Origin: Cyanophora paradoxa CCMP329
Taxonomy: Eukaryota > Plantae > Glaucophyta
Direction of reading: 5' to 3'
Assembly: GCA_004431415.1 (NCBI GenBank)
Contig: QPMI01000056.1
Coordinates: forward strand, 62,001-126,000
Length of the DNA stretch: 64,000 nucleotides
Shown: piece by piece, positions 28,215-50,883 of the stretch
How the letters are laid out: the number at the start of each line of letters is the position of its first letter
How positions within the stretch are numbered: position 1 is the stretch's first letter
Notes under the pieces: model-generated
What the model was told of the DNA's origin: nothing
The model's input: only the letters and a program-made list of their open reading frames with translations
Databases searched by the model: none
Translations under genes and position numbers: made by a program

Positions 28215-31200
28215 TTAGAGGCTGACGTTGTGGGCGTCGCCGTCGAGGTAGGCGGAGGACGCCTCCGCTTTGTAGCCGTCGCGCGTGTAAATGTATGGGT
28301 GCGAGGCCTCGCCGGCCGCGCCGCCGGGCCAGATCGGCACCACGACGAGCTGGTTCAGCCCGTCTCGCGACAGGCCCGACACCGCCAGCGACGTCCGCCC
28401 GCCCTTCACTGTGGCGATCGCCTTGCCGTCCTTCACGACCTGGTAGGCCTCGGGGGTGCCAAGGCCAGCAGTCGGGGCGTTCCATGAGAGGGTGCCCGAG
28501 GTGCCGCCAAGCAGGCCGGTTGAGACGCCGGTGAGCCGAAGGTTGGACGGGGCGTTGCGGGAACCCCGTGCATTGCCGATCGCGACGGTGCCCATCAACA
28601 ATCCGGTCACGGCCGGTCCGAAACCGAGCACAAGGGGCACGGCGTTGCTCGATGCTTCACCAGAGTGACCGCTTGACGTAAGAGGCGCCACCGTGAACAC
28701 AGAGCGCGCTCCAGCTCGCAGGCCACGCGCTGTGTAACGCGTGACGCCAGCGCCCGCGCCCGTTGCTGGCACGGTGGCGATCTGCTGCCCGTTGAGCATC
28801 ACAACGTATCTGCGCATCGAGAAACGTTAACGTTACGTATATACCGCTGCAGATTGCGATTGAGCGTGACGACAGTAGGCTCGCAAAACCCCGGTAATGC
28901 GCACCCCGTAATGGCGCCGGCGCTTGCAGCTGCCGCGGCTGCTGGGGCGGTCCACGCCAGCTGCGCGGCCGATCCGTCCGCCGCAGCGGGGGCGACGGTG
29001 AGGGTGATGCCTGAATCGCTCCCGGCGCTGCCAGCCACCAGCGGGTACGAGGGCGGTCCGGCGACGCCATTGTCGCCGACGGGTACGACCTGGAAGACTG
29101 TGGCACGGTCGCGGGGCAGGCCGGAGACCTCGAATTGAGTCTGGCCGTCCGCTGCCGCGGTGGTGCCGATTGCACGGCCGCCCATGAAAATTATGAAAGC
29201 GCTCAGAGCTCCGGATCCGGACGCGGGCGAGCTCCAGTTCAGCGTGCCGGACGCCCCTCCAAAGAGGCCAGACGAAATGGCCGTGAGTTGCAGGTTGCCT
29301 GGGGCGCTCGGGCTGGGAGCGTTGATGGTTGCGCCGAAATCCGCGGACGTGCCGTTCGGGGCAACAAACAGAGGGATGGTGTTGCTCGACATCTCGAGCT
29401 CAGGAGTTCCATATGCATTCTTCGAGTACAGCGGCGCCACTGAGAACACCGAGCGTGCTCCCGTTCGCAGGCCACGCGCTGCGTAACGGGAGACGCCAGC
29501 GCCCGTTGCTGGCACGGTGGCGATCTGCTGCCCGTTGAGCATCACAACGTATCTGCGCATCGAGAAACGTTACAGATTGCAATTGAGCGTTGCGAATATT
29601 AATTAAGCTCGCAAAACCCCGGTAATGCGCACCCCGTAATGGCGCCGGCGCTTGCAGCTGCCGCGGCTGCTGGCGCGGTCCACGCCAGCTGCGCGGCCGA
29701 TCCGTCCGCCGCAGCGGGGGCGACGGTGAGGGTGATGCCTGAATCGCTCCCGGCGCTGCCAGCCACCAGCGGGTACGAGGGCGGTCCGGCGACGCCATTG
29801 TCGCCGACGGGTATGACCTGGAAGACGGCGGCGCGGTCGCGGGGCAGGCCGGAGACCTCGAACTGCGTCTGGCCGGGTGCGGTGGTGCCAAGAAGCTCGC
29901 CATCTTTCATTACCACGTACGAGTTCGCTGGGCCGGCGGCGGGGCGATTCCACGACAGGACGCCGGAACGTCCGCCGAGAAGTCCGAACGAAATGGATGA
30001 AAGCTGCAGGTTGCTCGGGGCGTCACGATGTGGTGCGGCAGACATGCCAGGCACTGCAGGCTGGCCCGCCACGGGGGCACTGTCGCCGGCCTGCGAGTTT
30101 TGGTCGACGGCCCGGACGACAAAGAACGAGCCGGCCGCGGTAGCCGAGCTCATAGTTGAAGCTAGAAGTAGATAGGAGTACGTGTCCCCAGGCACGGCTC
30201 CCACGAGCACGGATGGGCGTCCAGCTGCAGCACGGTCGGCCGCCCAGACCTGAGTTCGCGAGTTCAACGGAAGCCGCAGCCCGAGTCCTGATCGATATCA
30301 CGAGGGCCGCAATCGCGATCGCGAGCACCTGGTATGTGGCGACGGAAGAGCCGCCAGCAGCAGCGGCCTCGGGGGCGTCCCACGCGACGATGAAACCAGC
30401 GCCGGCGCCGGCACTCGTAGCACCGTCGCCTCTTGCCACGTTCGAATTCGCGATCGGATCGTACGCAAGCATGGTCCGCACGTTCCGAGGGGCAAACGGA
30501 GAAGAGCCGAGGCCCGAACCAGCGCCTGGGCCGCCAGGCCCGGCGGCTACTGGCGGGCTGCTGCCGGCCTGACCGTTGCGACCGACTGCGCGGACGAGGA
30601 GCAGGCCGCCCGCCGCGGCGCCCGCCAGACCGGCCGGCAGCACGGACGAGGTCGCATCCGGCGAGGCAGTGCCGAGCAGGCGCCCCGGAGAGCCGTCAGG
30701 TCCAGCAGACCAGATCTGTAGAGCGCGCGCGTTCAAGATACGACTCCATCGTTGTCGAGAGGTGTACATATGCGAACCTCGAATTTCGAAATGGGAGATC
30801 CGGATCCAGCTCCGGATCCGGAGGAGCCCGCAGCATCTGGCCGGTCCCACGTGACAACTGTCGAACCAGGATTGCTCGGGGACGAGAACGCTTGCACGTT
30901 GCGCGGCGCAAACGCTGGGTTGCCGGATCCGGAGCCAGCGCCGCCGCCGGGAGTAGCAACGGGCGGGGTGCTGCCCGCCTGGCCGTTGCGGGCGACAGCG
31001 CGGACAAGGACAAGCCCGCCGGCAGCCGCCGCGCCAGCGGGAAGGGCGTAAGAGGTCGCGTCCGGCGAGGCAGCGCCAAGCAGGCGCCCCGGGGAGCCGT
31101 CAGGTCCAGCAGACCAGATCTGTCATGATCAGATCTCGAGACTCAGCGGACCGTATACTCAGAGCAGCGGCCGAGAGGCACGCGAACCTCGAACTTTGCG

Positions 31201-34200
31201 ACAGGGGATCCGGAACTCGATCCCAGTTCGGGACCCGCGACGTCAGGTGGGCCCCAGGCAACAACAGTAGACCCGGGTTGATTCGGTGACGGGAAGGTCC
31301 GCACGCTGCTCGGCACGTACGCCGGATTGCCGGTGCCGGCGCCTGCTCCGAAGCCGGCACCGGGTGCGGGCCGAGTCCACGACAAGTTGGCGGAGCCGGG
31401 GCCCTGGTTGTACGGTGCACTCGTGAGACCGAGGCCCTGGTTGGGGTACGGCTGGTTGGCTGCGCCAGAGTACGGCTGATACCCAGGGGTCGTGCCGGGG
31501 CCGCTGCTACCCCACCTCGGCAGAATTCCGCCGGAGCTTGCCTTGAGCTTAGAGAGAACAAGGCCGCCAATCAGGAGAGCGACGCCGCCAATGCCAAAAG
31601 CGATGGGCAAAATGAACGCGAGCTGCGTGCGCAAATTCCAGTCAACATTACGATCGCGATGCTCGAATTAAAGCAAAGCGCTATCTAGATCCTATTGAAT
31701 ATATAAGATTGCCGATCGTGAACATATATAGCGAACCTGGCTGTCGTTGCTCTTGGAGGTCTGGTGGTCGGGTGGGGCGGCGTAGCCGAGCTCTGATGAC
31801 AGGATCGGCACAGGCATACTCGTGTCCGGAGGAATGAGGGCGCCGGTGGTGAACGTGGTCAAGTGAGTGCATCGTCCGCGGAGGTACCACGTCGTCTGCG
31901 TGCCTCCCATCAGCCGCAGCCGCAGCGCCGCAAGCTAGCAATTGAAGGGAAGGGTCTGGAGTGACGTACGCCGATCTGGAAGATGTCCCCGGGCTTGCTG
32001 GGGTCGTTTGCATCACCTGCTATATATAATTAGGTGCCGTAATGAGAATATACATTATTAAGGGTCGATGCGCAGATCAGATAAAATGATAACTCGCGAG
32101 CGTGCACCGAGTTCCATGTTGGCCGGAGGGCCGCACGCCTCCCAGGACTCGGAGGTGATATTCCAGAAGAGGAGGGAGAGCGCGGGGAACATCGGCGGCC
32201 GCTCGACCACAGTCGCGGGGAAAGGAATCTCTGCATATGTAAACCGTAAGATGATAAAGCGAAGCTCATGCGGGAGCGCTATCGTGGGTGATCTAGACAG
32301 TAATTATATATCACGAACCCATAATAATTGGGGCGCTTGCACTGAGGCCTTCGATAGTCTGTCCGAGAACTGCGAACGAAAATCATGTCAATTATATTCA
32401 CCAACTCGAGCTCCATGTCAAGCATGCCGAGCAACTCGAGCTCCAATATTCTGGATAATGTGGGACAAACCGGAAATATCGAGGAAACTGCAAAGAGCGT
32501 GGCCACGAACGCGTAAGAGATTAAAGTATTCAAAAGCTTCTAATTCAGACAAAAAATCTGACAGCCTCACCCCCCAATAATCTTGGCGACGCCAACGCCA
32601 CCAGAACGTGGGCGGTACACGAGCGCGTACGGCGACGTCTCCATGTTCACCACTGCAACAGCGAACCCGTCCGTCCCCTCTGTTGAAAGCATAAGCTTTT
32701 ATAATACATATTTTATACAGCTTCGATACTGCTTGGATAAAGCGATGGCTTTCTATTGACGTGATGAGCATCGCGATAAGAGTTTACCTCTCGGTACGAA
32801 ATCGCGGATTTCTGAGATACATATAAATTGGGCACTTGCGTAAGAACCAGCTGAGGGTGCAAATGTTTGGGTTTGGGAAGTGAGCGCACGGAACGGTAGC
32901 AAAACTCTCGACTGGGCAACGCCCGTTGTTTTGTCCTGGTCAACCTGAATATTTGCAAGCGAGGACGATGATCAGTTCACATACAATACGACTAGAAAGG
33001 ACCGAGACGCGCACCGGGTAGTAGGGTCTCTCGTCGGTGAAGCAAACTGAAAATCGGGAGCAGCCTTCAGCAATATTTGCAGGTCGGGTACACGAGAAGC
33101 TTGCGCACTCTTTCCAGTCGTTATGCTGGCCTCCTTCACGCCGCGCTTTTTGAAGCCTTGAGAGCACAGGGTGCAGGCTGCGTTGCTTGCCGCGGGTTTC
33201 TGATGCCAGAAAATTTAAATTTCCGAACCTAGCTTCCACCTGACTTATATATATAATAATTAGAAGCCCGGACCTTGATGAGCTGGTCGAGTAGGCCCAC
33301 CAGAGGGCTCGTGAACTTCCCGTTCGACGTCCTAACCTCTGCCCTGTTGAGATAGGTAACGTCGGGGCTCCACTTGTCCGATGACTGCGGGGCACGCAAT
33401 TGCAACCGGTGTAAATTACAGATAATTCCGAAACAAAGCGTGGAGTTTCCAATGCGTACGATGGCCGCGCCGAGCGCCTTCGCGACTGCCGCATCCTTCT
33501 CTTCGACGATGTCGTCGGGCAGTTGGCACGGATCGATCTCCGGGGCGCATGCGTAGAGCCTCGCTATGTCGAGCTCGTCCGAAACCCTGAATTGCGATAA
33601 GCATGATTTCACGACCGCGAAGGTATCGGTATTGATAGCTGGTGGGACTAGCAAACCTCACAGCAATCGCGCCCACATTGGAGAGGGCAGTAATAGCGAG
33701 GACTTTGTCCTGAATCGACTGAGCCGAGGGAGATGACGCGCATGTGTCATTGATAAGGCTCTGGGTGCAGTTCTTGACAAGTGCGTCCGCTGAACGTTTT
33801 TGAATTGAACAATAAGTACGTAGACATTGATAAGAAATGGTGATGACGATGTGGACGCACGAAGCGAGCTCGATTGTAGTTGCTGCGCCGCAGCGCTGAT
33901 CGCTTGCAAGACTCGCGTGTCGTAAGCGAGGCGGGATAGCTTGCTCTTCAGGAGATCCAGCTGGGCCATACGTGACTGGTAGGAGGCGCAGGGGTCGCTC
34001 CGAGCCTTGACGATGGCTGTAAGGGGGACATCTGCAGTCGCACGGAGAAGGTCAAATACACAGAGCCTATTCAACGCTTCAATAGCTAGATTATAATTAA
34101 TATTCGTTATGCACGCGCACCCGTCCAGCCACCGTTTGCGTCGACGACCTGATATTCATTTAATTAGTCACATTACTCAGTACTATATATAGCTATAGCT

Positions 34201-37200
34201 AGTTGCAGAGTGCAGGGTTTAGTAGAAATCGACTTGGGAACGCACTGTCGCGATGAGATTGATCGGATTTCCGACAGGCAGAACTACAGGAGGAGGATAC
34301 GTACGTGTTAATATGCGAGCCCGGAATGATGAATGAATCGCGAGAAGCGAAAATCGTGTCGCACCGAGATCAGGCATCACGACGCCCGCTTGCGAAGGAA
34401 CCAGTAACGCGCGCCCAATCGGGGTCACGATCTGTCGTTCGCGTTATCGGCTCAGCGACTTCGAAATTGCAGATATATCTAGAGACTCGACGAGAACTAC
34501 AAAATAAATGCATTGAATGGGGTCGCACGCGGAGAGAGTAGGTGAGCGGGTTCCCGCTCGGCTCCTTTCCGCCAGGAATCCAGTCCGAGCACGTGACCGT
34601 GAACGTGTCTTCCAGCAGCCAGCCCTCGGGCGGCGTGATCACGCACTTGCCTCCCTCCGGGGGCCCCAGGAGCCGGACGCGGATTTCGTCAAAGACGACC
34701 TCGCCGGGCGGCGCGCCGGGATAGCTCGCGTAGCAGCGCAGAATGTACTCCTTGTCTGTACGTATACGTTTATGTAAGAACTCTCGGTTTGGATAGAATT
34801 CGAAGCTGGATAAGAGGGCGCCGCACTTGGCACGAGAACGGGACGCTTGTCAGGAGTGAAGTTGAGGATGTTTTCCGCTTTCGTCGTCCCGCTATTAAGA
34901 TAGCTGAACCAGAGGATTAGAAAGAGACCATTTACACATTGTACGGCGTTTGGTAAACGAGTGTGCGCACTCCAGAAGACCCGCGAGCTCAGGCTCGTTG
35001 TTGGGCGCGACCCACCCTTGCACGGCGACGCTTGGGTACTCCGGGTCCGAATCGACGCGTGAGCGACAGCGCAGCGCAAGCGAGCTTCTCGGGAGAAGGT
35101 TCATCGGGTTTTTTGTAGGCGAAATCTCGGTCTAGGGATTTTGACGCGGTCAGAGTTTGAATTGTGAATGCATGTGCTGTGGATACGACGCTTATTCGAG
35201 CATTCAGCGTACATCAATCTTGACGACGGGAAGTGGCTTGTCGAGAACGGAGATCGTGACAGATGTCATGTCCTCGGCCTTTGTTCCATCGGGGCACGTG
35301 GCAACCGTCTTCAAGTGCAGGGTGTAGGAGATTCCGGGGTTGAAGTTTGCTTCGCGGGGGCAGTGGTGAGCAATTATGAAGAGCGCGAACAATATTCAAA
35401 TCGCCTGATGCAGCAACAGAGCTCACCGATCGGGTTGGGAGTGGCGGAGCTGGGCGACAGTGAGACGGTCTTCAGCTCAGCACTGGGCCCCGCCTTGAAT
35501 AGGGCGTTGGGGCTCTCGAAGGCCTCGCCCTGGGGCACCAGGCGCCACTCGTGGACGAGAACCGCCGCCGCCGGGCACTTCCCGCGCGGGACCGAGCTGC
35601 GCGAAATACGTCTCAACTCGCCTGTCGTTTACGTTTACAGTGTAGTGTAGAGCCGGAGCCAAGACTATAGTTTATAGTGTAGTTATAAACGAAATCTCTC
35701 TCAGTTTATAGTGTGGATTCGGGTGGATAGTTATAGTCAGTTATAGTTATAGTTATATAGTTTTCTCAGTCAGTTATAGTGTGGATTTGCGAATTTGACG
35801 CACGCGGCGGTGGCGAGGAACGGGACATCCTTCCCCACAGTGCGGTCGCCGCCGCTGATGAGGGCCTGGACGATGGCGACGTCCGCGGGGGCTGCCAAAA
35901 TTAAAGGTTATAATTAGCCGCGTACAGCACATGTACAAATAGTAATATTGTAATTGCTCACGAGCACAAGCAGGCGACGGGAAATCCTTGGATGCTTCCT
36001 GAGGTAAACGTTGGCAGCTGTGAAGGTAGCTAAAGAAGTGGAACCTCCATACACAGCACTCACCGTCCAGCCTCCGAACTTGTTCATAGCACGCAGGAGA
36101 ACGCGGTGTACGCGGCCGCAAGTTGGCGAGAAGCTCATGCTGGTGGCAAGGTCCCAGGAAGTGGCGGCGCTGCCGACACCGTCCACGCGCCCGATCACTT
36201 TGTCGTGGTCCACGATCCCTGTGATTCCCTTCATCGTGGGCGCCGGGCTCGACTTGAGCTGCGTTCAGATGCATATTAATTCCGGGCGTGCTAAATCCGA
36301 TCCAAGTTCCGGGGCTCACCACGAGCACTAAGATAGTATATCTGATCAAAAGAGCGACAAGTTAGACGCGTATAAAAAGAGCGGATCAGTCTCTTCAGGA
36401 AAGCTTTCTCATGATCACCCGTACGGGGTTGCGTTTGCGGTCGGCGTGACCCAAGAGACAACGGATCCGGCCACGCTCGGCTGAGGAGCTGGCGGTACGA
36501 ATTTTGCGAAGCTTCAGTCTCAGGCACTTGTGTAGCGCAAGAATTGCATGGCACAGACCTACGAATCGCTGGGGATCCTTGAATGTAGTTGCGAGTTCGG
36601 GATTAAAAATATATGACATCTGATCGATCGCAAATGCGTTACATCAATAACAACTAACAGTAACGTGCGCTTTAAAAGCTTTACGCAGAACAAATCTGAA
36701 TCCACCTGGATGGAAACGCCGTCACCGGGGACAAGCACGCCGTTGTGACGAGGCTTGAAGTCAAACCAGAGCCCTGCGCGATGTCGCGTTCGTTGGATCA
36801 GAACAGCGAATCTCGGCGAGGATGGAGGGTCAAGCTCACCCATGAGATGGTCGGCGGTTGTCGTCGCGTCCTTCGCGATGGTCCCGTACGCATTAACGAA
36901 CGGGCTCGTCAGCTTGACACCGAATGATCTGCATCGCGATCGTCAAAACAACAGGAAATGAAGACGTTTGAGTGGTACTCTATAAGATCCATATGTGCTT
37001 GATTTGTACCGCCTACCTGCTTATTCCAGCGCGTGCGATAGGATTCTCCGCGATCATACCGATAAAGCAACTGAGTTCGAAACAAGAATCATTAGCAGAG
37101 CAGTTCCGCATGAAATACATATGAAATTAAAACAGTCTTGCAGCTGGCGCGGACCGATCTGTAAAAGCATTAATGTCTGCATGTGTGCTGCATTTATATA

Positions 37201-40200
37201 GAAGGAGCAGCAATGCACCAAGAATTATTCCGGAGGCGCCCACGCTAGCGGTGATGGATCCTGTCGCCCCACTGCCGTATCCCGCTGGCTGCGAGTAAAT
37301 CTTGTTCAAGGTATCTAAGAGCGCGCGGTTAGTAAAATTTGTACTAGTTTACATGTATACAACTACTTGTACGGCTACATAGGGAAAATTCTTATACCAA
37401 AGAAATCTGCAGTGTTGCCTTGATCGTATTCTTTATCGTGTTCTTGACGTGATGGGCCCTACAGAGGATCTTACTCATCGTGTCGTAATGCATGAACGTA
37501 CGTGAAAATGTATACCCAGTAATCCGCATTGATATTTCCGGCCTGAATCGCGCGTTGCTGGTCGTTATCTGCACAAATCAAAGCTCAGCGAAGCACACGC
37601 AGCACGCATATATAGGACGGGTGCGACGCGCCAGGGTCGATCTCCCTGTTTTGAGAAAGCGTATGTTAGTAATTTATATGTATACGTACGCGAATGCATA
37701 TATCGTGAAGAAATCCATGCCTTACCTGATATAGTACGGGACGTCCGCGTTGGCCGGCCCGTTGTTCACAATCGTGACATCCATGTAGAGCTGCAACTTG
37801 TTCAAGTCCTCCTTGATCCAGTACGTATGGGTGACCGTCACGTTCAAGTTTGTCGTGTCCGTCGCGCGGTGCACTGCGCGCCACAGATTATCGCACGGAA
37901 TTAATTTGCAGCTTTTGCGATCGTGATCATGGTGGAATCGTCTCAAGCTCAGAGGTACTACGGTACCCGACACACCAATGAAAACGCCATCAGTGTCGAC
38001 AGCCTTGCTCAGAATGCTGCCCTTCATGTGCGTGGGCACGAACTGATTGGGGTCCTGCGGAAGGCATTATAATTACAGCTAATCGCGAACTAGGAGTAAC
38101 CTCAGATATATATATGTGGCTTACCAGCTCGCGAGATGCGCCAGCGTTCTCGTACACGACGCCGTTGATCATCGTACCCTGTTCATACATGTAAGTTGAA
38201 TGCGGCGCCGCTGACAAGCGAAACAAGAAGTCTCTAGAATACGAATTCCGGGCAACTGCACACCCAGCCTTCGAAGGGCGCGCCTGTGAGGCGATGTATG
38301 GATCAGCACTCGAATAATTTGCAAAGAGCACGTCGAATTGTAAAATTGATGACGCATGCGCACCCGGAACAAAGAAGTCCTACACGCCAGAAGTGGCCAT
38401 GGATTGAACGCGCATATGAAAGTCAGTTACGGGTACGCATTCAGAGAGATAACTTGACGTACGCCGCAGTACGCGAGTTGCCTGCGGACGCATCGCGATC
38501 GGATATTAAAGAATATCCACATGCGTGGCCAGCGGATCGGATTAATATTACGCGGGCCCGTACGCACTTCCCCTGGCGCCATCCGGTCGGGCTCGGGGCC
38601 TCTTGGTTTTGGACGTAGTCATCCGAGGCTGGCCATTCGTTCCAGCCGCTGCAAAATTTCATCCGCATCAGTTGGTGCATCGTTAAACGAAGATTTAGAA
38701 GGTGCGCACTCGCAGTCCACATCGACGAAGAGACCGAGGGCGACGCGCCGGTTCCTCTCATAAGCCAGTGGCCCTAAAACAAATGTCTCATGAGACGATT
38801 TCGTTTCTGCCGATGCTCGAATTTTAATAAGTTAAACAGATATGTTTCACATGATGGGGGAGGTGTGTTGAAAGTCCCGAGTGTGCCTTCGACGCCGTGA
38901 ATGGCTGTAAGCAGGCACTTTCCTGAAATGCAGAGTATCAAAGAAGGTCCTTTCCGAACTGCTAATTATATAAAAGAGACGCGCCTACGACGAAGTGGTC
39001 TCCAGTGCCAGGGTCAGCGAGGTAGGCCCCCTTTTCGGGCAGCGAGACGGCTGCACGCGCGGTAGCCAATCAGCGACAAATGGGTTTCGCAGATAATTGT
39101 ATAATATTAGGACTGATAGACGCACCCAAATGACCGCGAATCTCAAAGATCTAGCAGAATGTCCAAGAGGAACAGGAGTAAGTGAAAATGAAACCAAGCA
39201 ATCAATCGGAGATGAATTCGAAATGCAACCCTCTCACCGGCCAGTAGTCTGCATAATCGAGAGAAGGGGCGTGATCATTGAGGTAGAGTTGATTCAGCTC
39301 GTCGATGAAAGACGCACCAATGAGCGTCTGGTGGATTACCTCCGTTGGATAATCTTGCCACTGCCCCTCGGTTCCGCAGTACTTGTAGCTCGTAAAGATT
39401 TCACCAATGTGCCTGGCAACCGTGGCATATGCGCAAGTCGGCATCTTCGAACGAACTATATTTATATTTTGCTTTGAAATAGGACTCACCTGCCCAGCCA
39501 GCGAGGGAACGTTCCACCTTCAGTGCAGTAATTAGATATTGAGCGCTGAATCGCTCAAAACCGCGGATAAAGCTCTAGGGCGCATTTACTCGTTTTCGCA
39601 CCGTTTGCAAGTGCGTCTGGAGTCCCCTGGAGCCTCTTGCGCAGTCTAATTATATAAGGCCGTGCAAAGCTCAAGGTCCGCAAAAGAGGACTCATCACAA
39701 AAAACTATTTCGGACCCGAGCCAACCAGCCTCTCTCACAAAGGTGCCGTAGTCAGGATCGGTGTTCACAGCCCTGCGGAAGTTGGCTGATGTATGCATAG
39801 CCATGCTCCATCTCCCACCAACTTCGTCCGTCCTGTGAGCTATTTTAGAACATCCAAAACGATCGAATAACGCCCGAGGCGCGAATTCGATGATCGTGCG
39901 CGCACCGGTGGATTTCGAGACAATACTGTGCACCCTCTAGTCTGTTAGCAAAAAGCGACAAAAATTGCAATGCGTTAGACGTACGCACCGCGTCGGAAAG
40001 GAGGACGGGGCTCTGTATCAATTTACGCAAAAAGTTCTAATGTCAGCGAAACATCGGATGATAGCAAGTGCGAAGAGAGAAAGGCAAATTAAAGTGAGAT
40101 TGCGTTTGACGCGCCTTGCAAGGAATGTGCACGTCAATCTACAACGCACACATGCGCACAAAAATGTCAGTAAAACAACATGAGGAACCTGCAATTCATG

Positions 40201-43200
40201 CTAAAAAAGCACAGCGACTGACCGTCTTCGAAATCGGATCCCGCATCCGGGTATCTATGGTCACGCTTCCACACTCGCCAAGCACCTGAGAGTCCGCCAT
40301 CTTTTTCGTCAACGGCTGCCATGTATCAGATGGCCCCGCTCGCTCAAACTTGACGAATGACGCCTACATTGGAGCACGCAACAGGTCAAGCTCGATACAG
40401 AAAGGATTAGATTGTGTACTCACCATGAACGTCATATTGCTTTCGCCAGTAAATCCGGGCGCGGTAACCGTTGTGCCAAGAGGGTTCGTCGTTTTCGGGT
40501 AGCTCTCTTTGCCCGCTTCGTGGTAAGTTCTGCAATGTGCAGGATCCGGAGGAAATTAAATCCAAGGTCAGCAGTCAAAATCACATTTGTTGTTTGGAAT
40601 TGAATTTGCGGTTGACACTAGTACTCAAGTGTGTAATCGCAATATATATAGTTCTGACACACGCACGTGAAATAAACGCTCGTTGCGTTCACTGGGGTGT
40701 TTCTGCATGCGCAGGTTTGCGTCCGACGGTCATACAAAAAGCGGCAGACGCTGTGTTCCAAGAGGGGAAGAGCGCACGAGAACTTCATGCACCAGTACCA
40801 CGAATCTGCCGTTCGGTATTTCATTTGTTGTAAGACCTTCACAAATCAACTCTGAGCGGAGAAGAGAAACACTGAACGCACCATAGGGTCCACGCCTGCA
40901 GGTGTCAGCGGTTTGCTTGATCGTCCGCGCGGAATCGATGTACTGCACACCACCAAAGTTCGTCGTCCCGTACATATGGGAATCTGGATTGAGAGACGCA
41001 GGCGTTTGCGTCCGCATTGAGAGAAGCAAGCGTTTGCGTTCTCATGTCAAGACCTAGGGGCCGGATACAGCTGGCGCATTTGCGTGTATAATTATATATG
41101 GAACACGGCGCATGCTAGCTATAGCAGGTAGATGGGCAGGCATATATATGCATATGCATATTGAACGGTGCTTACACGTGTATCCACCGCCTTGCTGCGG
41201 GGATGTCGTTCCGTTCGTTCTGTGAACGTCAAACATCGTTACGGCTGCAAAGCCGTCTAGATCTGCTTTTTGGGAGGAAAAGATCTAGATGTACCCTGTC
41301 GGCTTAATGTATGTTGTCCAACTGCGCGCGTTTTATCAGATAGTTTTCAGTGGGGTCCCTTCGAGGCCCCTCAGCGCACATTGCCTTGTCGCCGGACACT
41401 CCGTCCACAAAACGTCGCCTCGGGCGCCCTTGAACGCCGTTCAGGCCTGCGGCCGTTTAAATTGAGATCTAGAAAATAGGTAATTATTTCTGTCAACCAA
41501 TGAGACGCACCCAGGTCACCGGCGTCGAGCTCGGGCCGAGGCCAAGGCCACTTAAGAGCAACGGGAGGCTCGGGCAGCGGTGCCGCTGGCGGTGCAGCAT
41601 AGCACGGGGGGGTGCCACAGACGAGCCATTCCTGCTCAGTGGCGCCTGCTCTCCGTAGTCAATATCGATATCGAAATCGACGACGCGCATACGCATACGT
41701 ATTATTTTTATACACCGGCACCGGATGTAAATTAAAGGGACGGTACTCACTTTGGTTGTCCGCCTGAAACCACACCCGAAAAATTCCAGACGTCCGCGAA
41801 CGAAGTTTAGAGTATGCACCCAGAGGGGCCGTTAGCGCAGTTGCCGGGTCCGATCTCGGGTACAATCTCAACGTTCCCTGCACGAAAACGCATGTGCGCA
41901 TGTTACATATACATTGAAACCAGAAGAAAGACCTGTGAACCCCGGACGCACACGAGTTTCATTAAACACAAACCGAATAAGCTGGTCCCAGCCGTTGTCG
42001 AAATACCAGCTGTTCACCTAAAGCGCGAGTTATTGAAAAATAAGCTGCCGACTGCTGCATGACCATGAACTGCAAGCTGCAATTTGCACTCACGAGATTG
42101 TCGCGGGCGTTTTCCAACCCCATCGGTTGAGTGGCTCTGTATACGCACAAATCAACTCAGCCGCGGATTTGAAATTCGAGGTACTTTAATCGCAATTGCG
42201 ATCGGATTCAGAGTTGGGAGCTGAAGCATTTGTGCTATTTCACTATTTAACGCCGGCGCCCACGCACGCAATGTCGAGCACATAGCCTGCCCCGATATCG
42301 ATGTCCACAATTAGAGTTGCGCATGCAAACAAGCTCCAATCACGTGTATGTTCGGGCACCGTAGTTGGTGTAAAATATTGAGTAGGTGCCGTTCCTAAAC
42401 TCAGCTGGCATGTTGTCCCATCGATCACACACGCAATAATCGCGAATGCTGCAAAAACGATGTTACGCTGACCGCGGCATTTTGACTTCCAGCTGCAGAT
42501 GACAAAAACAGAATCAAACCTGGAACCACCAGAGCATCCGCCCTGGTTACCGCAATTTTGGAGCTGGTAACCATCAACGCATTGGCCCCTGTTGATGTTC
42601 GCGCCACCTGACGTCTTGTTGTGGGGGCACTTTCTCGAGAACAGCTGTTCCACATTCGCTGGGACGCCAACCGCTGCGCGCGCGAGGACAAGGTCAATTC
42701 GCAAGTCCATTTGAGCCATATATATACCAACATTGATACTAGTTGAGTGCTTTAAGGAATATTAATCACTCACTGTCGTTGCATTTCCTGACATACCTGC
42801 GAGCCGATATCGATAAGCAGTGAGTATTGCGGTTGTTTACACGCTGCATATCCAACAAGCTTAAGTTGAAGTGTCAAATGAACTTGGCGGACCATTTCTC
42901 GTCGTCCCCAAACGGGGCTGCCAAACAATACGTGGGGTCATACACGTTGACAAGCTTGAACTGGACGCCTTCCGGAGGGAGGACATTCGTCAGGTTGACG
43001 ACATTATCCTGCAGCAGGTGGCGCTGCGCATGCGCGACTCCTGCGACAAATCCCGATCTCACGTTAGCAGGATTAAGAAAGCCTCGCCGCCGAGCTCCGA
43101 GCTCGAGGCCACACGCGCGCAGGTGGCATGAACCGCCCGACGCACCGGACTCGACTGCAGCTGCTGATGCGGGGACAGCGCTGGAAAGGAGGGAGCATGC

Positions 43201-43293
43201 AACTAGCAAGGCTGCCGCTACGAACAGCGACGTTGGAGCTGCTTTTGCAGCTGTTGTGCGGACGCGCGACCGCGCGCCCCTTGGCCCGGTCAT
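28215..43293 (-). CDS. Giant single-pass polycystin-1-like receptor: signal peptide, ricin-B-like lectin, bacterial-adhesin-like domain, REJ, GAIN/GPS, TM, 8 FN3 repeats
   Basis: SP: ..SLFVAAALLVACSLLSSAVPASA. Lectin-like: FKLVNVYDPTYCLAAP..KWYVRKCND..EQLF. REJ: ALISGGDRTVG...PPEGGKCVITPPEGWLLEDTFTVTCSDW..PLTYS. GPS: LLFWNITSESWEACG...GRCTHLTTF (31851-31871). TM: LAFILPIAFGIGGVALLIGGLVLS-KLK. FN3: APSNLQLSSIS..VLSWNRP..SYVVMKDGELLGTT..QFEVSGL. Not every intron in 32-43 kb was phased. Confidence 0.72.
28770..29865 (-). repeat. Recent internal duplication of an FN3 pair including its intron
   Basis: ~28770-29140 is nearly identical to ~29500-29865 (QFEVSGLPRDRA..GPPSYPLVAGSAGSDSGITLTVAPAAADGSAAQLAWTAP + intron + YVVMLNGQQIATVPATGAG). 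Confidence 0.93.
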
Positions 43294-43411
43294 TGCGTCT
43301 CAGACTGCTTGATCTCCCTTAGGGAGAACTGAAGCTGGAGTTCGAAGAAACCTACGGCTAGCTACTTTAGTATAGCCTAAGGATGTCGGACTCTGCTAAT
43401 TTAAGTGAGTT

Positions 43412-43434
43412 CAGTATTCAAGTGTTACACGGTA
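43412..43434. mobile_element. Solo right-hand terminus of the CCGTGTAA MITE family
   Basis: cagtattcaagtgttacacgg|TA matches the MITE end at 56298-56320 (cagtaaataagtgttacacgg|TA); no partner end was found. Confidence 0.5.
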
Positions 43435-44293
43435 CAGTAAACTGCTCTGATCACGAGGCTCACGGCGCGCACGCCGCCTGCGGCGCTGCCTCACAGCTCT
43501 GGACTCCGGGACTCGACCTACCATAGTACCCTTTTTTGTTATGAATTTCGACCTGCGATCGCGAGTGGCCCACTGGCCCGGCCCCAGAATCTCAGAGTCT
43601 CAGCCGGCGCCTCCGGCCGCGGGCACGGGAGATTTGACACTGTCACAGACCGTCGGACTCAAAGTGTGACAGTCGGAGTCCCATCATGGCATTAATATTG
43701 TCCAACGACTCCCAATTGCAAGCTTAAGATATCGATCATGATCATCATATGCATGGCATCGGATTTCGCTCGCGATCGGAGCTCGAGCTTCGAGATCCAA
43801 ATGTCAGTGCACTGCGGAAAGCCCGAGTCGGTATGGTATATACAATGATAGTATAGCAAAAAAAGCAGTCTTACTGACCGACCGCAACTCCCATTGGTGG
43901 ATTTTGGTCAATGCAGCAAGGGAGCGCAAGGGCCGCCGCGGCGCAACTCCCGAGTCCGCCGCGCAAGGCAAAAACTTTAGAGATTGCTCTGTGCACATGA
44001 GTCTGTGAGTTCGCCGTCGTTTGAAAAGTTTGGCGTACTGCGAGTCTGCGACTCACAGTGAGTTTAAAATCTATAGCTAGATCTAGATCTGTTATGCTGC
44101 ACATGCATGCTGTGACAGTACTAGTAATAGTCTAGTATATTCCATGAATTTCGATAGATCATGCCCTACCTTAGCCTAGTAGCTATCCCTGCACATGCCC
44201 CCACAATGCTGGAGTAGACTAGAGGCTGTGGCCGACAATTCAGCAAAACAAATAGTACATTCCATGATTAATATTTAGACTCGGATTTTAGGT

Positions 44294-45297
44294 TGTATAT
44301 ATATCGTAAGAAGTGGGCCAACACTGGCCCAAGAGCGGCAAGCTCGAGACTGGGATTGGGGCTCGAAACCGCTTTACACGATTGGACCGGCAGTTCTTTT
44401 TCCGATCCGAAGTTCGGTTTTTTTTCGGTCTACCCGACAGAGCCCGTCAATTGGGGCTTTACACGATTGGACAGGCAGTTTTCTGGTTTTTTTCTGATGC
44501 ATATGGCAAAAAAGCTTAGTGAGCGGCTTATCGTCAGTAATAATTATTCGTCACAGGCTCCGCGGCTCATCATTATCATGACAGGGATGTGTGGGTACGG
44601 ACCCGTACGGTGCGCTTCATGATCATTCACAACATGAGGTGCGAACGCAGGCTTGGGTACGCTAGGCGATCTTAAACAACCAATGACCCAAGCTCGGCTA
44701 GTTGAGCGCCGACGAGTTAGGGGGGGTGGGGATAAGCCCGAAGCTTGCTAGTCGGCTAGTCATAGTTATCGGCTAGTCATAAATTGTCATAATCAGGCGC
44801 CAAAGGCGCCTCCGCCAGCAGCTGCGGCGTTCCAAATTAGCCTAGGCCCTAGGCCTTCCGAATCATGGGAATCAAAACCGGCGTTCGGCGTAACGACGGC
44901 GTGACGTCGGCGCTCCGAATTTGTTTTTTTGAAGTTCGGCGTTCCGAATCAAAACCAGGACGAAAGTGATTGGCAGATGAATTGCGAATTTGCAATTGGT
45001 GGATCAAATTGCAGCTTGGTAATTGCTGGCAATGTGCTGCTAGTCCGGAATTCGCAGAAATTCGGAAATTCGGAATTGGGGGCGCAGAATTCGGATTTCG
45101 CGCCGCCGAAATTCGCGAATTTCGAAATTGACGGGCGCCAGCACTGGCCCAGCAGACGGAAAAAAAACCGAACTTCGGATCGGAAAAAGAACTGCCGGTC
45201 CAATCGTGTAAAGCGGTTTCGAGCCCCAATCCCAGTCTCAAGCTTGCCGCTGTTGGGCCAGTGTTGGCCCACTTCTTAAGTATACGATATATATACA
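44294..45297. mobile_element. Non-autonomous DNA transposon (~1 kb) with long (~130-160 bp) terminal inverted repeats
   Basis: tgtatatatatcgta..agaagtgggccaacactggccc...ccgatccgaagttcggttttttt (44294-44425) is the reverse complement of ~45160-45297. An inner IR pair gcccgtcaatt/aattgacgggc lies at ~44442/~45127. No ORF and no clear TSD. Confidence 0.85.
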
Positions 45298-45567
45298 GGC
45301 CAGGTGGGGGCCGTGGGGCCCCGATCGGGGTCCACCTACCGGCGATCAGCCTCAGGATCAGGGCGGATTCAGGCCCATTTCAAGGGGTACTACGGTAGGG
45401 CTCAGCCGCTTAGGCCCCGGGTGCGGGCACTGCGGGCCGGTGCCTATAGCTAGGCGGCGCGGCGCGCGGCGGCCGCCCCTGGCGGTAGCCCACCGCCGAG
45501 AGGTGCGCTACATGTACAGCCTACAGGGCGCGGCGCATGCCTCCTGCGCGCAGCCGGCGCCCTGCGC

Positions 45568-46312
45568 GCCGCGCCGCCGCCCGCCGCGCCTCGAGCTCCG
45601 CCCGCCCGATCGCGACGAGCCGCGCCGCCGCCCGCCGCGCCTCGAGCTCCGCCCGCCCGATCGCGACGAGCCGCGCCGCCGCCCGCCGCGCTTCGAGCTC
45701 CGCCCGCCCGATCGCGACGAGCCGCGCCGCCGCCCGCCGCGCTTCGAGCTCCGCCCGCCCGATCGCGACGAGCCGCGCCGCCGCCCGCCGCGCTTCGAGC
45801 TCCGCCCGCCCGATCGCGACGAGCCGCGCCGCCGCCCGCCGCGCTTCGAGCTCCGCCCGCCCGATCGCGACGAGCCGCGCCGCCGCCCGCCGCGCTTCGA
45901 GCTCCGCCCGCCCGATCGCGACGAGCCGCGCCGCCGCCCGCCGCGCTTCGAGCTCCGCCCGCCCGATCGCGACGAGCCGCGCCGCCGCCCGCCGCGCTTC
46001 GAGCTCCGCCCGCCCGATCGCGACGAGCCGCGCCGTCGCCCGCCGCGCCTCTGCCCCGCCCGTCGAGGCGCGCCGCCGCCCGCCGCGCCTCCACCCGCCC
46101 GACAAGCCGCACGCGCCGCCGCCCGCCGCGCCTCGAGCTCCACCCGCCCGATCGCGACGAGCCGCGCCGCCGCCCGCCGCGCCTCTGCCCCGCCCGTCGA
46201 GGCGCGCCGCCGCCCGCCGCGCCTCCACCCGCCCGACAAGCCGCACGCGCCGCCGCCCGCCGCGCCTCTGCCCCGCCCGTCGAGCCGCGCCGCCGCCCGC
46301 CGCGCCTCTGCC
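45568..46312. repeat. 51-bp GC-rich minisatellite (~9 near-perfect units, then variant units)
   Basis: gccgcgccgccgcccgccgcgcttcgagctccgcccgcccgatcgcgacga repeated head-to-tail. Confidence 0.97.
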
Positions 46313-47047
46313 CTCAGGCCTAGCCTAGTAGGCCTGTCTGTCTGCAGCTGTCGGCGGCGGCGGCGGCCGGGCGGCCGCGGCGATCGGGGGCCCGGCGGCC
46401 CCTTCCAGGCGGCCGGGCCTAGGCTGTATGGCGTGCGCGGGCCGCCCCAAGGCGTAAAGCGGGTCAAGCGCAGCCCCCCGGCCCCGGCCCCCGGGCGGCA
46501 GGGAAGGGGGCGCAGCTCAAACCCTCTGCGCGCAGCCGGCGGCCGCGGCCGGCGGCGACTCGGTGATCGGGTCGCCCCCTGCAGGTGCGCTGCTGGCCCA
46601 GCTGCCGCAATGCAGGCCGCCGGGCGGCCGCGCGCGGGGCCCGGGGGCGGGCCAAGGCGGTGCGGCGTTGCAACCCCCCTGGGCGGGGGGCAGCCTCAGA
46701 GCACATGGCGTTGCAGCGCAGCTCATGATCATGATCACGATTCCGGTTTATGTAGTCGGGCCAAGCTTTAGTTTGAGCCCCGGGAGTCAGTGAGCGATCA
46801 CTCGGTCGTGATCATGATCAGCAGCGCCTCTGAGCGTCCGACGGTCATGTCATCACCTGCAATTGCAATTGTCCGATTTTGCAGCTACAGCTGCGGCTGC
46901 GGCATCCTTTTCACGGGAACTTTTTGGAAGTGTAACCCCAACTCCGAGGCTCCCCTTTATATCCCAAAAAGCCCTTTATTTCAGCGTTGTAAAACCGCGC
47001 TAAGAACGTGAGCCAGATATCGATGCATGCGCATATGTTAAGCCTCG

Positions 47048-47600
47048 TCCTAGTATAGGCGCTCTTGGGCCCGCGCCCGCTTTTGTCGTCTCCGGTCTAG
47101 AGGCCTTTCACGTGCACTGAGTCATCTACAAACCGCCGGCGCCGGCGCCTGCCCATCCAAACATACACCTAACCGGATCCCTCTCTCATTCCGGAAACAA
47201 GAAAGCCCCCTCTCGATCTGGGAATTGGCTAGCGCTCGGGCTCCGGGTCCTAGCGATGCGACCGTCGGACCCGACCCTTATATTTTTGCCACTGGGCCAG
47301 CCGCCCGCTCTCGGCCCTTGGTCCCCGGTCTGGAGACCTTTCGTCTGCATGCGCAAATCAAACCGCCAGACTCTGAGAGCACCCCGCCCGCCCCCTATCA
47401 GAAAGAATAATTAACTAGCTATCGGCGTCCCTCTGCGCGAGCTTCAGGGGGAGCCAGGTCTAGAGACCTTTCATCTACAACCCGCGATGGCCTCCGCCCC
47501 CATCGGTTCGCGAACTCCCGCAGATCCCGATGCAGGCGCTGGTCGACACGGCGGAGACGGACCTCATGGAGATGCTCGGCCACCACTGCCGGCTCCGACG
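47048..47600 (+). pseudogene. Decayed duplicate of the bestrophin penultimate intron/exon
   Basis: gatcccgatgcaggcgctggtcgacacggcggagacggacctcatggagatgctcggccaccac matches 26991-27055; intron match cctagta..gcgctcttgggcc...ccggtctaga..atctaca..ccgccggcgcctgcccatcc (26811-26912). Confidence 0.88.
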
Positions 47601-47754
47601 GGGGGGGGGGGGGGGGGGGAGGGGGGGTGGGGCTGGGGGGTGGGGGTGGGGGGGGGGGAGGGTTAGGGAAGGAGAAAATTTTAAAGCTAATTAAGGAGGC
47701 CTCGCGCCTGCTTAAAGCCCACGGTGCCGCAGTGCCACGGTGAGGCGTTGCGGG

Positions 47755-48408
47755 ACGGGGCGCGCAGCGACGGACGGCGGCGGACGGCGGCGAGTGGGGC
47801 GAGAGGGGCGCGGCGCAGCGGGGTGGGAGCCCGCGGCAGCGGACGGCGGCGAGAGGGGCGAGAGGGGCGCGGCGCGGCGGGGCGAGAGCCCGCGGCGGCG
47901 GACGGCGGCGAGAGGGGCGCGGCGCGGCGGGATGGGGCCCCTCTGCAGCGGACGGCGGCGAGAGGGGCGGGGCGCGGCGGGGCGAGAGCCCGCGGTGGCG
48001 GACGGCGGCGAGAGGGGAGAGAGGGGCGGGGCGCGGCGGGAAGGGAGCCTGTGGCGGCAGACAGTGGCGAGAGGGGCGAGGCGCGGCGGGAAGGGAGCCT
48101 GTGGTGGCGGACGGCGGCGAGAGGGGAGAGAGGGGCGGGGCGCGGCGGGATGGGGCCCCTCTGAAGCGGACGGCGGCGAGAGGGGTAGGAGGGGCGGGGC
48201 GCGGCGGGATGGGGGCCCGCGGCAGCGGACGGCGGCGAGAGGGGAAGGAGGGGCGGGGCGCGGCGGGATGGGGCCCCTCTGCAGCGGACGGCGGCGAGAG
48301 GGGTAGGAGGGGCGGGGCGCGGCGGGACGGGGGCCCGCTGCGGCAGACGGCGTCGAGAGGGGAAGGAGGGGCGGGGCGCGGCGGGATGGGGCCCGCGGCA
48401 GCGGACGG
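47755..48408. repeat. ~60-bp GC/purine-rich minisatellite within a ~1.6-kb insertion that splits the bestrophin pseudo-copy
   Basis: gcggacggcggcgagagggg(n)aggggcggggcgcggcggga...ccc repeated about 11 times. Confidence 0.9.
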
Positions 48409-49284
48409 TCAGCAGTGCATTCTGCGGATGATGCTGGCCTCCACGCCGCATGCGCAGGCCCCCGCCCCGCCTCCTGATGCAGCTGGAGGTCAGCTCCATG
48501 AGGGCCAGCATCACCAGCGTGGAGATGAGGCGGCCGCGGAAGGCCCGCGATCAAGGAGGCTGTGTGTGGTGGGGGGGAGGGGGGATGAGAGAGGAGGGGG
48601 GGGGGGAGAGGGCGGGCGGAGGCGGGGCGCGCGGCGGGTCCGCTCGCGGGCGAGGTCAGCCGCTGAGCTGCAGGTCGGACGGCGCCTGCAAGTCGCGCAA
48701 CCACGACGTGACCACGCGCAAGATTCGATCCAATGCATGCAAAACCGCGCGTGAGGAGCGGGGTGTGGGGGGGGGGGGGGGGGGGGGTGAGGGGGCGGGG
48801 GCCGGGGGGCCGGGGGGGGGGGGGAGGGGGAGGGGGGCGCGGATCGCGGACGAGGCCCGGCGGCCCCTCTTAGGATGGGGGGCCGCCGCCCGGCCCGGAT
48901 CAGAGCTAGAGCCAGGGAGGCGGGAGGGAGGAAGGAAGAGGGGGAGGGGCCGGGGGGCGGGGCTGCAGCTGGCCGGGGGCTGGCCGGGGTTGGCCGGGGT
49001 TGGCCGGGGTTGGCCGGGGCTGGCCGGGGCGGGGCGCACCGCGGGGAGGATCGCACCATGGCCACCAGGAGACCGGGAGGGGGATATATATAGAGGCGGA
49101 AGGTCCTACGGCGCTCGTGTACGGGGGCGCCCTAGGGTGCACGTGGGTAGGGGCTGGGAAAGTCGAGGGCGGCCCGGCCGCCCCCGGCCCCGCACCCTCG
49201 GGGCGTGCCCACGCCTAGGCCCTCAGGGCCTCGCAATCGTCGCCGCGGCCGCACGGACGCGGGGCGGGGCGGGGCGATCCGGGA

Positions 49285-49580
49285 ATGCGCAGCTGGAGGA
49301 GCTGGCGCCGGACAGCCCCGGGAATCGAACCTGCACGCGTACGAGAGCTACGTCGTTGGCGGCGGCGCGTATCGCAAACGGGGCCGCGCGCGCGCAGCGG
49401 GCCGGCCTGGGCGTCAGAAGGATCGGACGTGGGGTATACGTATATACGTACCCAAGGGTGTCTCATCATCATTTCGAACTCGAGCTCGGGTTTGTAGCTC
49501 ACTTCCTGCAGGGAGCTCGATAGTTAGCTAATTATCCTTCTTCCGTGCGGGAGTCGTAAAGATTATTGTGTCGAAGACAA
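49285..49580 (+). pseudogene. Decayed duplicate of the bestrophin last exon and 3' UTR
   Basis: gcagctggaggag..ggcgccggacagccccgggaa..cctgcacg..agagctac.tcgt.ggcggcggcgc and cttcctgcagggagctcg...gtaaagattat..gtcgaag match 27180-27417. Confidence 0.88.
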
Positions 49581-50883
49581 TTGCTAACAAAGCAAACACG
49601 TGAACTAAAGCTAGAGCTGCCTAGTGAGCCGGAATAAAAACTGCAAGCACGCAACTGTGTACATTCAGGCTAATTAAAGGATTGATATCGATATTCGAAT
49701 CCAAGATAAGATAAGATATAGCGCACAGAACCAAAATAAACACTGATCATGATTTACCTATGAGCCTCAGAAGTGAAAAGCAAGTAACGCGGGTTCGGAC
49801 GGGTCCGTACACGCATCCGATGATCCGCAGCTAGAGCTATATAAAGCTACATCTCAGAGTCTAGACTATTAATTATAATGCGGGACCTATCGCTATAGCT
49901 AGATCACTGTCTGCGAAGACGCAGAGAAGCCAATGTCCGACGGTCCCAGGGCGCAATGAAGACGGAGAGAAGCCGAAAGAAGGAGAAAGCTGAAGGTCCA
50001 GAAAGGAGAGAAAGAAGAAGACAAGAGGTCCGTTCCATGGAAGGTGGAATACCAAACCGCCCGCGCGCCTTTGCCCCGTCCTTAAGAAGAGGAAAGCAAA
50101 GAATAAGACGAAGAAGAAGCACAGAAGCGATCGAAAGTCCCACGGTCCACTTCCTACGGAAGGGAAGAAAGGAAGAGGAGGAAAAGAAAGCAAATCGGTC
50201 TCCGACGCTCCCGCAAGAGCTTCGGAATTCGAAGCGGCGCGGCGCCAGGCACCGACTCGGCGAGCCGGGGCCGGGGCCCGGGCCAGACGGGCAAGGGAAG
50301 GAGGGCCGGGGCCGGGGCCGGGCGGGCGGGCAGCGAGCCGGGGCGGGGGCCGGGTCCGGGGCGGGGCGGGGCAAGGGATTAGAAGCTTAAGGAAGGCAGG
50401 AAGAAGAGGAAAAGAAAGCGAGCTGGCCTCCGACGCTCCGGGGCCAGGGGCCGAGGCCGGGGCCGGGGCCGGCGCCGGGACCCGGCGGGGCAAGGCAAGG
50501 GATGGATGGATGGAGGGAGGGCCGGGGCGGGTGACGGAGGCCTGGCCCTCCATCCGCAGGGGAGGGGGGGGGGGGGGATGGAGGCCTGCCTGGGGAGAGA
50601 AGGTGGCCGCCATCAGCCAAGGTGCACGTGGGGCCACAGCACGGGGGGGGGGGGGGGGGGGGGGGGAAGGGAGGGCGCACGCGGACGATGGGAATGAGGG
50701 GGGAGGATCACCGGATCCGGGGGGGGGGGGGGGGGGATGGAACAGGAGGCCCGGAGGTTGGAACAGGAGAGGAGATCTAGGGCTCCGAGCGGGCCCGCCG
50801 GGCCGGACCGGGCCGGCCGCGATCGGCCAATGCCCCAGCGCGCGCGCGCTGCCATGGCTCTGGGTCTGGCCTCGGGATGGGCG

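Follow-up and report, generated by a model that had tools for sequence, protein, structure and literature searches.

The 64,000-nucleotide (nt) stretch of Cyanophora paradoxa CCMP329 DNA analyzed here (contig QPMI01000056.1, positions 62,001 to 126,000 of the forward strand; hereafter the window) most likely holds, on its minus strand between positions 28215 and 43293, one many-exon gene for a single-helix membrane protein, in which a REJ domain and a GAIN-like region closing with a GPS-type motif precede the helix and eight FN3 domains follow it. The locus is one member of a multi-copy C. paradoxa family rather than a unique one, and the architecture is real at the genome level and common to the paralogs. 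The database proteins closest to it are, in fact, models of these paralogs in the EukProt set EP00741_Cyanophora_paradoxa, which we refer to as P0001 (tig00000131_g7474.t1), P0003 (tig00021108_g18346.t1), P0024 (tig00021532_g22184.t1), and P0005 and P0009, two models on tig00000180.

The gene model was built with an exon-chaining script whose score draws on codon log-odds and splice motifs and gives extra weight to exons that P0001 matches in tblastn, and three of its exon junctions were adjusted by eye against the paralogs. It totals 59 exons and 2,581 codons on the minus strand, and the script over-predicts tiny exons in the 5' part. Hydrophobicity of the leader, the helix and other segments is given on the Kyte-Doolittle (KD) scale, and AF2 stands for AlphaFold2. 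From the start codon to the stop codon, the features are as follows.

42893..43293, minus strand: exon 1, with its ATG at 43293 and 133 codons, encoding a leader and about 90 residues of a cysteine (Cys)-containing domain
39051..42892, minus strand: 5' part between exon 1 and the first supported exon, with ab initio mini-exons only and few GC-rich blocks
35804..39050, minus strand: exons of an N-terminal ectodomain module, supported by paralogs, without a Pfam name
33955..35349, minus strand: exons of the REJ domain, from Pfam REJ and collinearity with P0001
31851..33954, minus strand: GAIN-like region of about 13 short exons, the helix-rich part first and the strand-rich part last, ending in the GPS-type motif
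32108..32230, minus strand: GPS exon a, with the LLFWN...W.AC part at 32133-32174
31737..31895, minus strand: GPS exon c, with RGRC-T-HL/TTF at 31851-31880, then a 37-residue linker to the helix
31623..31736, minus strand: in-phase intron of 114 nt, GTTCGC...GCAG, 41% GC, with in-frame stops
31554..31622, minus strand: predicted transmembrane helix LAFILPIAFGIGGVALLIGGLVL, 23 residues, KD 2.38, followed by SKLK
31314..31553, minus strand: juxtamembrane segment of low complexity, with much G, P, Q, Y and N, expanded in P0001
28218..31313, minus strand: array of eight FN3 domains, from weak Pfam fn3 matches, profile and fold
28575..28640, minus strand: moderately hydrophobic linker between FN3 units 7 and 8, VPLVLGFGPAVTGLLMGTVAIG, KD 1.89
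28260..28559, minus strand: FN3 unit 8 as a folded unit, from AF2 and Foldseek
28215..28217, minus strand: stop codon after ...NVSL, where the C-terminal tail resembles that of P0001

Reading frame, introns and paralogs

The gene is intact from 39050 to 28215, with about 2,000 codons open. Between 37070 and the stop codon it is collinear with P0001 across 1,500 residues, at 60.6% identity in a single BLASTP alignment, and the frameshift that an earlier note on this DNA had cautioned about did not appear, as no frameshift or stop relative to P0001 was found over those residues. All 32 introns of this supported part are GT-AG and measure 61-207 nt. Their GC content is 45%, against 65% in the exons, and these short AT-rich introns between short exons account, within the supported part, for the island of about 50% GC at 32-44 kb in a window whose DNA is 60-80% GC. 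The FN3 half of the gene, unlike the half in the island, is made of GC-rich long exons with few introns. The donors of the gene are mostly GTNCGY (GTGCGC, GTTCGC, GTACGT), and its acceptors mostly end in CAG.

That the REJ domain, GPS-type motif, helix and FN3 domains belong to one gene, as had been proposed, is borne out by canonical junctions and by the same order of parts in two paralog models. The last GPS exon ends at a good donor and holds no stop codon; the 114-nt intron between 31736 and 31623, exactly as the earlier note had described it, joins ...SNDSQ to the helix exon in phase; and the helix exon has no ATG ahead of the helix. On other contigs, P0001 joins REJ, GPS motif, helix and FN3 in one model, and P0024 does so for the GPS motif, the helix and about ten FN3 domains. 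These two GPS-bearing models, of 1,531 and 1,228 residues respectively, disagree in the linker between GPS motif and helix when compared to the window at 31623-31800: P0024 has 23 residues (about 148-170) where the window has the intron, and P0001, near residue 948, is without the 23 linker residues present in the window and P0024. The extra residues of P0024 are probably intron read-through, and the disagreement between the two models is likely an annotation error or alternative splicing. Three more models, P0003, P0005 and P0009, end inside the ectodomain. The public Cyanophora models of the family are, in other words, fragmentary or read through introns, a point worth bearing in mind when they are used for annotation.

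At the 5' end, the signal-peptide-like leader was found where it had been reported, and the ATG at 43293 is the best signal-peptide candidate among all the minus-strand ATGs in 37000-44500. A long charged n-region is followed by a hydrophobic core (KD 2.25-2.7; encoded at 43162-43230) and then by PASA/AA, and exon 1 closes at the donor GTCCGC at 42892. Above 39050 there is no paralog to guide the model. In 39051-42892, the share of 45-nt windows above 0.62 GC is 8%, compared with 26% for the supported part, and minus-strand donor and acceptor motifs are mildly enriched. A Pfam scan of ten more stop-free stretches in the 5' part of the gene gave no match apart from REJ, and a Ricin_B domain, for which the earlier note had wanted Pfam to be run, found no match in the scanned exons and stretches. 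That the leader exon is joined to the downstream exons in one transcript is plausible, and we regard it as somewhat better than an even bet.

Domains on the two sides of the helix

The REJ assignment, which the earlier note had based on motifs, is secure at the level of sequence profiles. Pfam REJ (PF02010) matches the stop-free minus-strand stretch 34373-34849 with an E-value of 4.6e-12 and 45.7 bits, against a cut-off of 25, and the match falls on exon 34529-34755. In P0001 the same profile matches residues 298-543 (E 1.3e-21; profile positions 189-435 of 452), which map to 33955..35349. When the REJ exon was used in a HMMER search against 1.84 billion representatives, only 19 proteins were returned, with the Cyanophora paralogs best; the likeness to known REJ proteins was detected through the Pfam profile only and not by direct sequence search. 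Upstream of the REJ exons, the N-terminal module is followed by paralogs in pieces: residues 11-33 of P0003 match 39000-38873, its residues 77-149 match across the splice junction 37976/37873 (E 9e-8), and residues 1-218 of P0001 match 37057-35797.

Between REJ and helix, the GAIN-like region follows the order of P0001 residues 544-935, being 60-80% identical to them and free of frameshifts. Its GPS-type motif is divided among three minus-strand exons (32230-32108, 32019-31970 and 31895-31737) and reads LLFWN-ITSES-W-EAC ... RGRC-T-HL-TTF, with the putative scissile bond between the codon ending at 31860 and the codon starting at 31859. The HL/T and both tryptophans of the GPS consensus are present. 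LLFWN and SWE.C are unchanged across three paralogs, RGRCTHLTTFT is identical in the window copy, P0001 and P0024, and in these three sequences, whose overall identity is only 42-67%, conservation is highest in RGRCTHLTTFT and the helix. By our own estimate from residue frequencies, the pattern C.HL[ST].F would occur by chance in about 3e-4 of proteins of such size. Compared to what we take to be the GPS consensus, Cys 2 and Cys 4 are kept and Cys 1 and Cys 3 are both replaced; their joint loss is the pattern expected if one disulfide pair was lost, and one of the two canonical GPS disulfides is indeed missing. The motif FWN..W..C ... CTHL/TTF is where the earlier note had placed it. As for context, the motif lies about 380 residues after REJ and 37 residues before the only strong helix, and the same REJ-to-GPS-to-helix placement is seen in PKD1 proteins (PMC3321182). 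Nine of the ten best named look-alikes of P0001 residues 700-975 in the ESM-Atlas are GPS clusters, with scores of 0.84-0.86, which we treat as a lead only. The GPS/GAIN assignment, based on motif, context and these language-model look-alikes, is weaker than those of REJ and FN3, and HL/T is a putative autoproteolysis site, judged by its motif and position.

Besides the leader, LAFILPIAFGIGGVALLIGGLVL is the only hydrophobic segment of helix strength, in agreement with the single helix followed by KLK that had been described. The first 17 of its residues hardly vary among three paralogs, with LAFILP.AFGIGGVALL unchanged, which places the helix among the most conserved parts of the protein. It carries a proline and paired glycines seven apart, a pattern that suggests helix-helix packing rather than a mere anchor. 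No other segment rises above the background set by FN3 strands, so that the 11-transmembrane (11-TM) body of the PKD1/REJ family was not recovered. Pfam PLAT did not match the helix exon or the whole of P0001, and the FN3 units begin about 100 residues after the helix; PKD_channel, 7tm and HRM did not match P0001 either, all of which agrees with the layout without PLAT, channel domain or seven-transmembrane (7TM) part put forward before. The juxtamembrane segment presumably resembles the Pro/Tyr-rich regions to which cytosolic adaptors bind, and in P0001 it contains repeated NQPYP-like units (residues 985-1050).

The tail consists, as had been counted, of eight FN3 repeats ending in NVSL and a stop codon at 28215. 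They are encoded by exons 31622-31188 (which also encodes the helix), 31119-30778, 30715-30329, 30249-29633, 29552-28905 and 28809-28215, and in five of the units an intron interrupts the coding sequence at a constant position. Individual Pfam fn3 matches have E-values of 4e-4 and 7.6e-3, below the curated cut-off. When the three single-exon units were combined into a profile and compared to the PDB, however, FN3 domains of titin (E 4.1e-7, and 3.8e-3 for 1BPV) and DCC (1e-3) were matched, the weakest matches, which include the FN3 of NagJ, reaching 9e-3. Modeling of unit 8 by AF2 with a three-row alignment gave seven strands, with a predicted local distance difference test (pLDDT) of 85.9 and a predicted template-modeling (pTM) score of 0.80. 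Foldseek returned 12 matches to this model at E <= 1e-3, of which the single-domain ones are all FN3; the top matches, also all FN3, have probability 1.00 and template-modeling scores of 0.65-0.77. This 100-residue unit superseded a single-sequence AF2 model of the complete last exon, which had a pLDDT of 51.7 and no significant result in the fold search. The FN3 fold of the tail units is confirmed in these predicted models. FN3 domains 3 and 4 of integrin beta-4 and the FN3 array of RIM-BP are among the Foldseek matches of unit 8, and Pfam Ig_RIMBP2 matches P0001, but the likeness to integrin beta-4 and RIM-BP is one of fold only, with no specific kinship.

Within the tail, a 272-nt direct repeat (28876-29147 and 29604-29875, 728 nt apart) is 97% identical, intron included, and preserves the reading frame; further tail segments 743-749 nt apart are 87-99% identical. 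These repeats show that a two-FN3 cassette was duplicated or converted very recently, and the inclusion of the intron, together with the fixed intron place in five of eight units, indicates that the array grows by cassette duplication. Tandem Repeats Finder was blank here, the 728-nt period being above its range.

With regard to topology, the 15 residues before the helix carry a net charge of -1, -1 and -2 in the three paralogs and the 15 after it +3, +1 and +3, values that obey the positive-inside rule in all three; for the window copy the charges are -1 and +3. In every studied protein REJ and GPS are extracellular and lie just before the first helix (PMC3321182; PMC1934368). On the basis of the leader, this rule and the flank charges, we infer that the FN3 tail is most likely cytoplasmic. 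The hydrophobic stretch at 28575-28640 was considered as a second membrane helix and found unlikely to be one: its KD of 1.89 is within the range of FN3 strands, which reach 1.96 in the Ala/Gly-rich tails of paralogs, the stretch has no counterpart in the paralog linkers, and AF2, at low confidence, shows no helix there. Cysteine is absent from the 1,016 residues behind the helix and from the 583 of the P0001 tail, and occurs once in the 1,057 of the P0024 tail, whereas the P0001 ectodomain has 18.

Alternative readings of the locus

Taking domain content, domain order, gene intactness and the FN3 fold as shown, we estimate at about 60% the probability that the locus holds a small member of a C. 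paradoxa family of type I single-pass membrane proteins, with REJ and a GAIN-like region and GPS outside and an FN3 chain inside. Several results weigh against this interpretation. The paralog sequences that support it are themselves gene predictions rather than complementary DNAs (cDNAs), and the 3.8 kb separating the leader exon from the first supported exon show a weak coding signal. Pfam GPS and GAIN do not match full-length P0001 even at E-values up to 10, and searches of PDB sequences with P0001 and with two GPS exons matched no solved GAIN chain. The helix exon found nothing in a word-based protein search, and P0001 regions used as seeds led back to P0001 and P0024 only, with no model of the window locus; as both kinds of search were confined to length windows and 8,000 candidates, these blanks say little. 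Finally, a Cys-free tail is no less typical of surface proteins than of cytosolic ones, even though tandem duplication of a Cys-free unit explains it equally well.

The missing matches to GPS and GAIN profiles and to solved GAIN sequences are what one would expect if the GPS-like motif were a relic, with no active GAIN and no cleavage, in a plain one-pass adhesion or scaffold protein. The lost disulfide would fit such a history, and so would the residues after the putative cut, where TTF is followed by TTGALI and not by the usual hydrophobic TxFAVLM consensus (PMC12716839). We consider this scenario unlikely, in spite of its being the most serious of the alternatives. H-L-T and the flanking RGRC...TTFT are invariant even though the paralogs differ at a third to over half of their positions, which argues for selection on the site itself, and the spacing to the helix matches that of known GPS proteins (PMC3321182).

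It could also be that the architecture is correct and that the copy in the window is a silent or decaying paralog that makes no protein, either because its proper 5' end is gone or because it is not transcribed. This would account for the lack of gene calls or transcript-derived proteins matching the helix exon and for the absence of any model of the locus among the results of the paralog-seeded searches, as well as for the scarcity of exon-like GC blocks in 39051-42892. The search blanks weigh little, however, given the length windows and candidate numbers already mentioned, and decay is hard to reconcile with about 2,000 open codons from 39050 to 28215, introns that are all canonical, a fully conserved GPS motif and helix, and a frame kept through the 97%-identical cassette duplication, so we regard a silent copy as rather improbable.

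The orientation of the tail calls for a similar evaluation. Very long FN3 chains are common outside cells, and the FN3 chain would lie there, or in a lumen, if the leader exon were not part of the gene and the helix served to anchor the protein as its signal, or else if the membrane were crossed once more. The leader exon is plausibly but not certainly part of the gene, the tail is, in addition to being Cys-free, low in complexity, as are many surface proteins, and the second hydrophobic stretch at 28575-28640 would be a candidate for a further segment. Nonetheless, we think it quite unlikely that the chain is extracellular: the rule for REJ and GPS placement holds in all the proteins studied, the cysteines of P0001 are gathered in its ectodomain, positive charges stand behind the helix in three paralogs, and the second stretch is no more hydrophobic than paralog FN3 strands and is missing from paralog linkers. 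Last, that a secreted REJ/GPS protein and a separate FN3 protein starting at the helix exon were read as one gene, for which one could invoke the fragmentary public annotation, with three models stopping in the ectodomain, is very improbable in view of the stop-free GPS exon closing at a good donor, the helix exon without an upstream ATG, the in-phase intron and the same join in two paralog models on other contigs, and to our knowledge a GPS motif without a following helix would lack precedent.

Around the gene, the flanks at 1-24000 and 45000-53000 contain ten long open reading frames of 330-504 codons, none with a Pfam match at E 0.001; they often overlap on both strands, which chance alone would produce in DNA so rich in GC. 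No relatives turned up in metagenome scans.

Known relatives and a possible role

Our literature search found no paper linking Cyanophora with REJ, GPS, polycystin or FN3, and none describing REJ/GAIN, one helix and an FN3 tail together. The claim of the earlier note that the architecture is undescribed stands for the layout with its FN3 tail, but not for the combination of REJ and GPS with a single helix, which is known from the sea urchin proteins SpREJ1, SpREJ8 and SpREJ9, all with a single transmembrane segment (PMC1934368). These one-helix proteins are the closest known kind. Like them, the Cyanophora protein has a large REJ ectodomain and, just before one predicted helix, a motif of the GPS type, without a channel part (PMC1934368); unlike it, they lack an FN3 array after the helix and have C-type lectin, EGF or PKD repeats in the extracellular part. 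The FN3 tail is, therefore, a new element within the PKD1/REJ kind. With polycystin-1 and PKD1-like proteins the Cyanophora protein shares the order REJ, GAIN-like region with GPS-type motif, first helix, and the HL/T site (PMC3321182), but no PLAT, 11-TM body, channel-like domain or PKD repeats were found in it; that the PKD1 family tolerates the absence of a multi-pass body is shown by SpREJ1, 8 and 9 (PMC1934368).

Adhesion G protein-coupled receptors (GPCRs) likewise close a long ectodomain with a GPS-type motif, followed by the TxF start of a would-be tethered peptide. Unlike them, the Cyanophora protein has one helix and no 7TM part for such a peptide to activate, and neither HRM nor GAIN hidden Markov models match its paralog P0001. 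Should the proposed topology hold, integrin beta-4 would be comparable in that FN3 domains follow its single helix in the cytoplasm, even though its ectodomain is unrelated and it has four FN3 domains, compared to eight in the copy studied here; under the same proviso, the tail could be likened to the cytosolic FN3 chains of titin, myomesin and RIM-BP. A further parallel is offered by the SEA-domain mucins of the MUC1 type, one-pass proteins whose ectodomain cuts itself outside the membrane, with the halves held together non-covalently, and whose SEA junction is considered a breaking point that responds to force. The autoproteolytic fold of these mucins is SEA, which is unrelated to GAIN, and their cytoplasmic tail is short.

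The GAIN domain is older than animals, as Dictyostelium and Tetrahymena have it too, and its place is invariably ahead of the first helix (PMC3321182), while its union with a 7TM part originated in holozoans (PMC12716839), and brown algae have REJ-GPS proteins with 6-7 helices (PMC4700764). The module is known as an activating switch of adhesion GPCRs and polycystin-1, and its role before it was joined to 7TM or channel parts is a standing question (PMC3321182; PMC12716839).

Cleavage, orientation, partner, function and expression of the Cyanophora protein are matters of inference, and the following sequence of events is offered in that spirit. The leader would carry the N-terminal part, that is the module, REJ and the GAIN-like region, across the membrane, where its target might be a ligand or the matrix, a glycan, such as REJ proteins bind, being one possibility. 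Cleavage at HL/T by the GPS may leave the outer fragment non-covalently bound until it is released under force. Such behavior would be akin to that of adhesion GPCRs and polycystin-1, and to that of the SEA domain in mucins with one membrane pass. The helix, Gly-rich and very conserved, probably packs against another one, of its own kind or of a partner, and the FN3 chain might serve as an inner tether or scaffold. Put together, and as a tentative proposal to which we give worse than even odds, this would be a glaucophyte family of GAIN-cleaved one-pass receptors with a titin-like cytoplasmic FN3 chain on the membrane-bound fragment, mechanically linking an outer ligand or matrix to the cell cortex, with the GAIN junction as a force-sensitive breaking point and the helix as a partner contact.

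If this proposal were true, it would add a second and much larger case of cytoplasmic FN3 arrays on a one-pass receptor, beside integrin beta-4, and a third use of the GAIN/GPS module, after those in 7TM receptors and in polycystin channels, this time in Archaeplastida. An alga of the plant lineage would show the module working without any multi-pass body, and would provide a simple system in which to ask whether GPS cleavage alone is a mechanical fuse.

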